Shown here piece by piece: positions 21,401 to 24,400 of a DNA stretch of 64,000 nt. Made by a program: the position numbers and the translations under genes. Each line of letters starts with the position of its first letter. The first letter of the stretch is position 1. Source of the stretch: Oopsacas minuta (lineage: Eukaryota > Animalia > Porifera); NCBI GenBank assembly GCA_024704765.1, contig JAKMXF010000343.1:372001-436000 (forward strand). The letters are read 5' to 3'. The notes beneath the pieces were generated by a model. The model had not been told where the DNA came from and did not search any database. It saw only the letters and a program-made list of their open reading frames with translations.

Positions 21401-24400
21401 TACTAGAGGATATATTCGCAGATTCACAACACCTCAAAGCTTGAAAAGTGTTCTAACAATCAATGGCCATCTTGGACAAGTTTCACATCATCCGCAAGGC
21501 AGTTGCTCTAATACAACTCTTCTCTTGCATAATTGTGTTCACTTTTTCACTAATTCTCCTTATTATTGGTTCAATTACAGTTGCTACAGCTAATTCTACT
21601 AATGACGAATTCTACCAGACAACAGATTATGTATCAGGTGGAAATCTACTTATTGTTTCGGGAATTTTCGGAATAATTATTTCGATCATTGGAGCACTCG
21701 GAGCTGTACCATGCTTATTCGATAGACAGGATAACTGGAATCTATGGATTGGACTGATCGTCCTTATTATCTACATTTTGGTCCTAGTTGGAATATTCAT
21801 TTTTGAAATATCAGCAGCTGGTTGGGCTTACAGTAAGTGGGATACAGTATCTCTATACTTGCAAGAACAACTCGTGGAAGATATACAAATTAATTACGGC
21901 ATTGGGAACATGGGTTACACAGCTAGTGTTGATTCAGTACAGCAGGAACTAATGTGTTGCGGTATCAACGGAGTGGATGATTGGGATGAATCGGAATGGA
22001 AGATGGAGATTAAGATTAATGACAATGACCGTCTACCCCCATCATGTTGCGGTGAAGCCGGATCCTCTACTACTGTAATGCCTACGTCCAATATGACTGT
22101 AGCTCCCACCAACATGACTGCAGCTTCTACCAATACGACTGTAGCTCCAACCAACATGACTGCTTCCACGAATGCCACTGTTAGAAGGCGACGTGAACTT
22201 ATCCGTAGAGATGTCCAAACTAATTCATCTAATACAACTATGCAAACAACTACAGCTATGCCTGTGGTTATCTGCAAGACAAATTATGAACATGCTTTCA
22301 GGACTGGCTGCTGGGATAAAATATCAAACGCACTTAACACTTACACCTTTCAAATTGGAGGTGTTACAATTGCTCTTGCGATAATACAAATACTGATAAT
22401 ACTCGTACCAATAATCCTACTAGTGATTGTGATAGTTGAGCTGAGACGCTCAAAGAGTATGTCAATCAAGTAGAACAGATCTTACAGCCCGCATACTGCA
22501 ACCCTATCATTTAGTATTATTAGTTATAGATTAGGTAACGTAACGTAAAGTAGTGTGTTCTTAGGTTCTCTCTACTAACTAATTGAATTGACTATTTTTA
22601 CATACTACCATACTTTATATTTTATTATCTGAAGTGATTTAGAGTATTAAACTATATCTTTATACCTTTATAGATAGAGAAGCAAGGAAATGCGAGGAAA
22701 CTAGATAATGCAATAGTACTCTTATCTCTTTGGGAACCAAAGCTAATACGTACTATCCGAGTGTACGTCTTATCCGAATAGGGATGGTATTAGAATGAAT
22801 GGGACTAGCCAGATCTTTGGTTTTGGGAAGATCTACTAATTCCCATTCATTATAATACCGGAGGTTCCCTAGATCTCAGAAAGAATATTAACTCTATGGG
22901 AGATCCAATTAGTATAATACATCATAAAAGATGTCAATAATATGCATTTGCAGGGCTATCAACTCTCACGATTTCTGGTGTACAAATACTGTAGAATCCC
23001 TGGTCTTTTCATAGAAAACTAATACTATATTGCATACCTCAAGACAGAATCGTGAGCTTTTACGAAACTTCCAGTTTGAGAGCCCTGCATTTGAACTGAC
23101 GGAAATTATTGTAAATGAATACAAGTACGAACTACAAAATTACCTTAATGAGAGTTTCAGCAGGCGGCGGATCTAAGAAATCGAAATGTATTAGATCATT
23201 TATGCCCAGACTCTTTAGCATAAGAATAACAGAAGATAGATTTGTTCTTTGTATTTCTGGAATAGGATTATCCTCCAGTTCAGCCTCATAAGCTGATTTT
23301 GTAAATAAACGGAAGCATTTTCCGGCAGCTACTCGACCAGCTCTCCCGGACCTCTGGTCAGCGGAGGCACGAGATATCGGTGTAACGACTAGTGACTCAA
23401 CTCCTGTTCTTGGATTGTAACATTTCTGTTTACAGAAACCTGGATCTATGACGTAAATAATCCCGTCTATTGTTAGACTTGTCTCAGCAATGTTTGTTGC
23501 TAGAACTACCTAACAAATACAGTACTCTGAATATCACGAAGACAAAGGAATTTCTACACAATAAACAACCATCTGTTTAGAATTGTATCTACTTGTTATT
23601 TTAAACATTTCAATAGTAGAAGAACTACTTCAGCAGTTATAATAATAACTTGTATTATTAAGAGTAAATGATGGTATTTTCACAGTAACACAGGTTTTTC
23701 TAAGGGGAGATAATTAGTTAGTATTGAAATACCCAATAGAACATTTATTAAGGTATATGTTAACAAATGGTTGTTGTAAATTTGTAATACAATTCTTATC
23801 TCAAACATTCCTACGAATTTCATTTTCCCTCGAGGTAAATCACACGCGTTATATTTTTCATTTTCCTTATGGTTATATACCGGATTCCAACTGTTTATTT
23901 ACTATTTTTAGCTCTGGAATAAAACCATATACAATTCCTTGCACCTGGGCTTTTTCGGGATACCGTATTTATAATTACCTTTCTCGCTCCTTTGGGAGTT
24001 GGTTCAAATATCTTAGCCTGTAGTTCAGTGGGTAGATTAGAATAAATAGGTAATATAATCAGTTCCTTGATACGAGTACCTAGCTTAGCAGTTCTATGTT
24101 TAAGAGACTCATGTGAATTTTCTATCTCTTCCTGTCCAGGGAGAAATACAAGAATATCTCCTTCAGGTTGTGTAACGTGGATTTGTAGAACTGATACTAC
24201 ACAAGCTTCAATGTAGTCTGCTTCAGGAGATTTTGTATAATAAATTTCCACTGGAAATCTCCTGCCTGGAATTCGAAATATTGGAGCATCGTCAAAGAAT
24301 TCTGAGAATTTCTCGATATCCATAGTAGCTGATGAGATCAATAGTTTCATGTCTGAACTAGAAGAGAGATAGTTTTAACCTACATTCGACCATAATTTTA

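Follow-up and report, generated by a model that had tools for sequence, protein, structure and literature searches.

Tetraspanins are regarded as compact, uncut organizers of membrane microdomains, and the variable region of their large extracellular loop (EC2) decides the choice of partner. The six-cysteine animal versions, such as CD63, TSPAN7 and uroplakin Ib (PDB 9w2b, 8jj5), combine four transmembrane (TM) segments with an N-glycosylated EC2 that carries the CCG and PxSCC motifs, a lone cysteine and a closing GC, and have their fourth and fifth cysteines about 6 amino acids (aa) apart. The cysteines of CCG, PxSC and GC form the EC2 disulfides (motif definition from PMC5662742). Here we describe a tetraspanin gene of the glass sponge Oopsacas minuta, located at 21463–22473 on the forward strand of a 64,000-nucleotide stretch of DNA (hereafter the window: positions 372,001 to 436,000 of contig JAKMXF010000343.1, assembly GCA_024704765.1). 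Its product shares the plan of these animal proteins, but it separates the same two cysteines by 74 aa that hold a ladder of N-glycosylation sequons and a basic block. We give about an even chance to the reading, suggested by sequence comparisons and structural modeling, that a furin-type convertase processes a module in this loop to yield a disulfide-linked two-chain tetraspanin with glycan-bearing arms.

Convertase processing is described for other membrane proteins. A furin-like convertase cuts a loop of the receptor Notch during maturation and the two chains stay together (PMC2726630); RQRR is one of the furin sites of Notch1 (PMC2779239). Notch, however, is a single-pass protein whose chains are held non-covalently via a heterodimerization domain, whereas in the sponge protein, whose cleavage is predicted only, they would be held by EC2 disulfides and TM packing. 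In the uroplakin tetraspanin pairs (UPK1a/1b with UPK2/3), furin and EC2 N-glycans take part in the maturation of the complex (PMC5242461, PMC4245495). In the limited literature collection that we searched there was no description of a convertase-cut tetraspanin or of one with a mucin-like insert, of hexactinellid tetraspanins, or of the beetle proteins discussed below; its furin-related matches concern the partners of tetraspanins, namely UPK2, EWI-2wint and ADAM10. In the uroplakins, the furin substrate is the single-pass partner UPK2 and not the tetraspanin.

A six-cysteine tetraspanin with an expanded loop

The gene is a single uninterrupted, intronless open reading frame (ORF) of 336 codons and a stop, whose product matches the tetraspanin profile PF00335 over residues 20–319 (95.6 bits against a cut-off of 32.1; E 4.6e-27) and is identical to protein P0001 in NCBI nr. 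Its closest PDB matches, all weak (E ~3e-4), are uroplakin Ib (UPK1B, the top match), TSPAN7 and CD53. The topology is that of four TM segments with a small first extracellular loop and a large EC2, which a hydropathy scan puts at ~190 aa. The AlphaFold2 model, built from 9 sequences with a mean predicted local distance difference test (pLDDT) of 54.6 and consulted only for the arrangement of helices and for how low its confidence is over the insert, has four long helices at residues 2–45, 54–85, 91–124 and 283–334. EC2 opens with the CCG motif (C165-C166-G167; 21955–21963) and continues to the PPSCC motif (P192–C196; 22036–22050), of which C196 forms the N-terminal anchor of the expanded loop. 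It is closed ahead of TM4 by the region 22273–22311, which runs from the fifth cysteine, C271 (22273–22275), to the GC motif (G282-C283; 22306–22311). Across the nine aligned orthologs, CCG, the PxSCC residues (P192, S194, C195 and C196), C271, G282 and C283 are all invariant. An antisense ORF of 120 aa across the repeat (21915–22277, reverse strand) was rejected as an unsupported by-product of the low-complexity sequence.

The original prediction, made from the window alone, had placed an insertion of about 70 aa after PPSCC. It is indeed present as the 74 residues from G197 to I270 (22051–22272), which are Thr/Asn-rich and predicted to be disordered, with a pLDDT of ~30 over residues 199–270 in a model that is poor overall. 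The 140 nearest tetraspanin representatives in which PxxCC occurs have a corresponding cysteine-to-cysteine gap of typically 6 aa, and of no more than 21 aa in 136 cases. Set against a typical gap of 6 aa, the 74 aa between C196 and C271 therefore represent a real insertion of ~68 aa. The first part of the insert is a 21-nucleotide (nt), that is 7-aa, tandem repeat array with an N-x-T sequon ladder (22088–22181), just as had been predicted; Tandem Repeats Finder reports a 21-nt period with 3.6 copies and 79% matches at 22088–22162, or alternatively a 42-nt period that reaches 22181. The five N-x-T sequons foreseen correspond to N210, N217, N224, N231 and N237, and two further sequons, N254-S-S and N257-T-T (22222–22239), lie 3–4 residues past the basic block. 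Thus, all seven Asn residues of the insert fall in N-x-S/T sequons (shuffle mean 2.3; P 0.0003), while the remaining 262 aa of the protein have a single sequon. Repeat duplication inflates the sequon count within any single species; the enrichment recurs in all nine orthologs with differing repeat units and is significant in nearly every one of them. With Thr and Ser making up 35% of the 74 aa, seven sequons, a tandem-repeat structure and predicted disorder, the insert has the features of a mucin-like domain or glycan stalk.

This architecture is confined in its distribution. Among the ~21 intact tetraspanin ORFs of the genome, the others have an EC2 of 68–148 aa, and the window protein alone reaches ~190 aa; no other has R-X-K/R-R, or indeed three consecutive basic residues, in this loop. 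In a profile search of 1.84 billion representatives, only its own cluster, P0016 (284 aa) and one fragment scored better than 1e-30, with generic tetraspanins starting at ~1e-22; at the level of sequence, the family is thus sharply bounded and restricted to glass sponges among those representatives. We conclude with high confidence that this is a tetraspanin of the six-cysteine type, specific to glass sponges and encoded by a nested gene without introns, with the loop between its fourth and fifth EC2 cysteines expanded.

The basic block and its candidate convertase

The basic block spans R241 to D250 (22183–22212; [10 protein letters not shown]) and consists of four Arg, three spacers, two Arg and an Asp. 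The original prediction had located RRRR exactly, at 22183–22194, as a fit to R-X-K/R-R. Two bonds are candidates for cleavage: R244/E245 (site 1), after the RRRR encoded by the R241–R244 codons (22183–22194), and R249/D250 (site 2), after the second Arg pair (R248–R249 codons, 22204–22209). The block lies within EC2 between sequons, and is by prediction lumenal or extracellular, disordered and accessible.

The absence of a polybasic motif from orthologs had been named in the original prediction as an outcome that would speak against it; all eight of the glass-sponge orthologs with a long insert have the block. These proteins, with inserts of 50–91 aa, 4–9 sequons and an overall identity of 62–65% (BLASTP), include a complete transcribed Trinity ORF of the glass sponge Vazella pourtalesii (EukProt EP00800). 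They keep the block at the same relative place while their Thr-rich arms vary in length. Anchored at its C-terminal end, the pattern reads as K/R, an invariant R, two variable positions, an aliphatic residue, an aromatic or aliphatic residue, R/P, a second invariant R and D/E/N, usually with further basic residues preceding the K/R and invariant R at its start. A tri-basic cluster occurs in 8/8 orthologs and the second R-R pair in 6/8, and in six of the eight all the Lys and Arg residues of the insert are confined to 8–10 aa. In every species a sequon lies 1–6 residues upstream of the block and a double sequon 3–4 residues downstream, such that the conserved unit comprises ~30 aa around the block and the N-terminal arm is a species-specific repeat. 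Every indel among the orthologs spares the block, and all contractions and expansions are in frame. The Arg codons of the block differ among species (AGA, AGG, CGA, CGT, CGC and CGG) and synonymous sites are saturated (dS, the synonymous divergence, is ~1.6); because of this, we take the block to be retained at the protein level.

The read runs covering the stretch comprise X1–X3, which are genomic DNA of the source species, and X5, a low-depth run of a relative with ~93% DNA identity. In the latter, 22121 is joined to 22181 with 20 letters between them, amounting to a net in-frame loss of 39 nt that removes 13 codons and two sequons. The corresponding contig piece has 31 substitutions, all at or after 22217 and none within 22181–22216. 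The sequon array is thus length-polymorphic over a short evolutionary distance.

Some of the homologous entries call for comment in their own right. P0015 is found at the locus L016 (ENA ERZ20067936, contig ptg000013l), and P0016 is recorded on a contig of the same length (2,021,315). The two group together, P0016 with a long branch that marks it as a fast-evolving duplicate confined to that lineage. ENA ERZ25072740 contains two different sponge orthologs (L002 and L020) on contigs labelled 3x and 324x, and thus mixes two glass-sponge genomes. P0010 (UniRef UPI003980366E), a 202-aa fragment that is 48% identical and labelled "Salmonella sp. s51228", is almost certainly a mislabelled eukaryotic contaminant.

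The sponge codes for a genuine furin of 946 aa (contig C297 of genome G000; L015:2518–5355) with an S8 prodomain, an S8 domain, a P-domain and a furin-like Cys-rich region. It matches mammalian furin (PDB 1p8j) with an E-value of 7.7e-156, with identical DDG, HGTRCAGE and GTSASAP motifs. Thr replaces the Asp of N-D-N-R-H before the catalytic His, and Ala replaces the Glu of D-G-E-V-T-D. These two positions line substrate pockets in furin, and the specificity of the sponge enzyme, judged from these replacements, may differ slightly from that of its mammalian counterpart. A co-fold of furin residues 121–587 with tetraspanin residues 222–266 scored an ipSAE of 0.92, against 0.00 for the best of 3 controls; the mark used was reached by 51/78 solved complexes and 2/108 mismatched pairs, a calibration that peptide and disordered partners such as this one lie outside. 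The runs share at least 60% of their contacts, the partner has a pLDDT of 41–42, and the confident interface comprises residues 244–253. In it R249 is placed against furin 262–264, 301–304 and 373–379 (the substrate-binding strand and the region of the oxyanion and catalytic Ser), and R248 against D163, D164 and H204. As a model, the co-fold points to the substrate-likeness of the basic block, as distinct from its cleavage.

Under the convertase reading, repeats generated by replication slippage would have expanded the loop between the fourth and fifth EC2 cysteines into a disordered stalk, heavily N-glycosylated and probably also O-glycosylated. The genome encodes a polypeptide GalNAc-transferase with GT2 and Ricin-B domains (found via Ricin-B), and so the Thr-rich arms may also bear O-glycans; O-glycans near convertase sites modulate cutting. 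The first two Glyco_transf_7C matches, L052 and L054, were rejected as such transferases, being chondroitin-GalNAc-transferase-like instead. Within the stalk, a ~30-aa module, consisting of a sequon, a cluster of three or four basic residues, two or three spacers, two hydrophobic residues, R/P-R, an acidic residue or Asn and a double sequon, would be cut by a furin-type convertase in the late secretory pathway at R244/E245, R249/D250 or both. The products would be an N-chain with TM1–3 and C165, C166, C195 and C196, and a C-chain with TM4 and C271 and C283. They would be held together by the CCG-to-GC disulfide core and helix packing, with each ending in a glycan-bearing arm.

In the CD81-type core a disulfide joins the first Cys of CCG to that of GC, and in six-cysteine tetraspanins the fourth and fifth cysteines pair with each other. 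Since the cut would split these cysteines between the chains, at least one inter-chain disulfide is to be expected; that the two chains would be held by disulfides, as originally proposed, is the consequence suggested by the conserved cysteines of CCG, PxSCC and GC. Neighboring glycans plausibly set the extent of cutting, and the processed loop most plausibly tunes partner binding or the surface spacing of the tetraspanin web. The glycosylation, the cleavage itself, the bond cut and the role of the processed loop are all things that we infer.

The beetle parallel and the rival readings

Two of the profile matches are beetle tetraspanins that NCBI names CD63 antigen or CD63 antigen-like; RKKR or RKRR occurs in their EC2, within an insert rich in Ser, Thr and Pro. 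With the Leptinotarsa protein as query, R-X-K/R-R with D, A or E after it was recovered from at least 11 genera—Leptinotarsa, Diabrotica (three species), Diorhabda, Sitophilus, Ceutorhynchus, Acanthoscelides, Callosobruchus, Euwallacea, Anthonomus, Psylliodes and Cylas. The insert varies greatly in length, and the site always lies close to its C-terminal end; some genera and isoforms do not have the site. The non-beetle insect relatives, from a stick-insect and a sandfly, have a short EC2 with no insert. These CD63-like proteins (e.g. XP_074029718.1 of Leptinotarsa decemlineata), which are known from automatic annotations only, share with the sponge protein a disordered, length-variable Ser/Thr-rich EC2 insert with R-X-K/R-R. 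However, the family is not orthologous to that of the sponge (profile E ~1e-20), and its insert follows the fifth cysteine, whereas that of the sponge precedes it. Further, the beetle proteins have a single canonical site without a second basic pair or a hydrophobic pair, and their arms are Ser/Thr/Pro-rich, of the O-glycan type, rather than sequon ladders. Given the different position of the insert and the lack of orthology, the design arose at least twice.

The loop type is hence shared beyond the sponge and to that extent less strange. The original prediction had named, as an outcome that would refute it, such loops proving common in described tetraspanins: we found no paper describing one, but the beetle entries share the design. 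The convergence on a glyco-arm paired with a multibasic site, in turn, raises the likelihood that the site is used. As a tentative generalization, to which we attach less confidence than to the sponge case itself, convertase-processed two-chain tetraspanins might constitute a recurrent class that emerged independently in glass sponges and phytophagous beetles, each having gained in the variable part of EC2 a disordered, glycan-bearing arm with a multibasic site, with a glycan-gated furin cut that changes partner binding.

Among the beetle proteins, isoforms of the tetraspanin gene (P0019, P0168, P0167 and those of Diabrotica) differ by entire Ser/Thr-rich blocks, and in Callosobruchus chinensis some isoforms have the multibasic site and others do not; the beetle site may therefore be switched on or off by alternative splicing. 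Long low-complexity EC2 inserts rich in sequons or Ser/Thr, as in the sponge, are also seen in the lamprey tetraspanin-1-like protein XP_061413854.1, in P0098 and in the beetle proteins P0069 and P0092. Unlike the sponge protein, these have no multibasic block, and they arose independently. Some metagenomic tetraspanins likewise have Ser/Thr inserts with no basic site. In the tetraspanin-like protein P0017 (MGH0174535.1, Acipenser sinensis, flagged UNVERIFIED_CONTAM), the CCG-to-PDSCC part of EC2 is duplicated, either through mis-assembly or as a real duplication.

The proposal of convertase cleavage stands in part: the conserved block, the genuine furin, the predicted disorder and the co-fold favor it, while a set of other observations weighs against it. 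The strict R-X-K/R-R at site 1 holds in only 5/8 orthologs, the other three having Ala, Glu or Ser at P4; at site 2, P2 is Pro in 2/8 and P4 is never Arg. The scissile position in the co-fold is R249/D250, with R249 as P1 and R244 as P6, and not the canonical RRRR/E, and furin-peptide complexes are already among solved structures, so that the score may be a memory effect. The ratio of nonsynonymous to synonymous divergence (dN/dS) of the block, 0.29 by a crude estimate, is not below that of its flanks (0.22–0.29), a comparison made at saturated dS and with register shifts in a 10-column block. Both the syntenic but more distant ortholog P0015, with a 27-aa loop, and its paralog P0016 are without the block; the tree, a polytomy with unsettled bootstrap support, did not separate its gain in the eight-species group from its loss in the L016 species. 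Finally, the aliphatic or aromatic pair between the basic clusters is conserved though a bare convertase site has no need of it, which hints at a binding or structural role, and the sequons 1–6 residues upstream and 3–4 residues downstream of the block could, from their placement, sterically mask the site.

Several of these points fit as well with an uncut block, which would act as a conserved docking or structural basic-hydrophobic-basic element on the glycan stalk and either bind an anionic partner (the membrane, sulfated glycans or an acidic surface on a protein) or fold back against the core of EC2. The hydrophobic positions and the acidic or Asn residue are conserved as strongly as the arginines, the strict furin consensus fails in 3/8 orthologs, and the flanking sequons, conserved in position, could shield the site. 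We nonetheless consider this unlikely: disorder is predicted for the segment, multibasic sites exposed in the secretory pathway are, as is well established, usually cut in an organism that has furin, and the co-fold docks the block in the active-site cleft of furin. Moreover, the beetle analogues keep only R-X-K/R-R with a small P1' residue, suggesting that cleavage is what selection has favored in both groups.

The insert could alternatively be a neutral low-complexity expansion in which the block persists by ancestry or chance. Its arms change length fast, even between relatives of 93% identity, its dN/dS exceeds the value for the core two- to threefold, and Ser/Thr-rich inserts without basic sites turn up sporadically in other tetraspanins. 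That the arginines persist with different codons at saturated synonymous sites, that indels invariably spare the block and keep the frame, that sequon enrichment is significant in nearly every ortholog and that the same design is found independently in beetles together make a neutral origin improbable. A role in templating biominerals, which the original prediction had also offered, found no evidence. In its explicit form the processed loop would template or bind biosilica, the Arg cluster contacting silica and the glycan arms organizing the matrix. In its favor are the circumstantial restriction of the family to glass sponges and the fact that Arg/Lys clusters bind silica in other systems. 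Glassin, a hexactinellid silica protein, likewise comes from a nested gene with a single exon; its Ser/Thr/Pro repeats differ between species, and it is proposed to be protease-cut (PMC10282587). Yet the insert is Thr/Asn-rich, without the His/Asp-rich repeats that known silica proteins typically have, no tetraspanin is mentioned in the main text of the paper on Aphrocallistes biomineralization (PMC10282587), and beetles share the design while making no silica. We hold this role to be very improbable.

Genomic setting and implications

The tetraspanin gene is nested on the opposite strand within a gene for a DHX16/Prp2-like DEAH helicase (18442–26479, reverse strand), which has HA2 domains and DHX16 as its top PDB match (E 2e-49). 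The exon-sized ORFs of the latter lie at 18442–18828, 19962–20381, 23895–24350 and 26189–26479, and the tetraspanin occupies the intron between 20381 and 23895. An SPT2 gene is adjacent, and this SPT2/DHX16 neighborhood is common to seven other sponge ortholog loci, a synteny that supports orthology. Single-exon nested genes are abundant in glass sponges (PMC10282587), and the nesting of the tetraspanin fits this tendency.

Three stretches in the helicase introns, 20335–20708, 22579–23139 and 24449–24822, two of which flank the tetraspanin, reach a read depth of up to ~3,200 against a baseline of 185. Many contigs break at them, with loose ends at 20503, 20543, 22995 and 23027; their appearance is that of dispersed repeats in high copy number, which may be small non-autonomous elements. 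Elsewhere in the genome tetraspanins occur in tandem clusters, with three in a row on contig C210 (G000:C210:153289–158029) and two on C298. A further group on C298 has in-frame stops and may represent pseudogenes or intron-containing copies; the tetraspanin loci of that contig span G000:C298:237582–239682 and 274296–277278.

If the convertase reading is true, the opening of EC2 would add a maturation step to the biology of tetraspanins, one that is irreversible and possibly acts as a glycan-gated switch. As far as the literature was searched, the design is recurrent yet undescribed, and its independent presence in glass sponges and beetles argues for selection over accident. It thereby offers two experimental systems, of which the beetles are tractable and have public proteomes. 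On the sponge side, little is known of the adhesion and surface molecules of these syncytial animals, and the family provides a surface protein restricted to their lineage.

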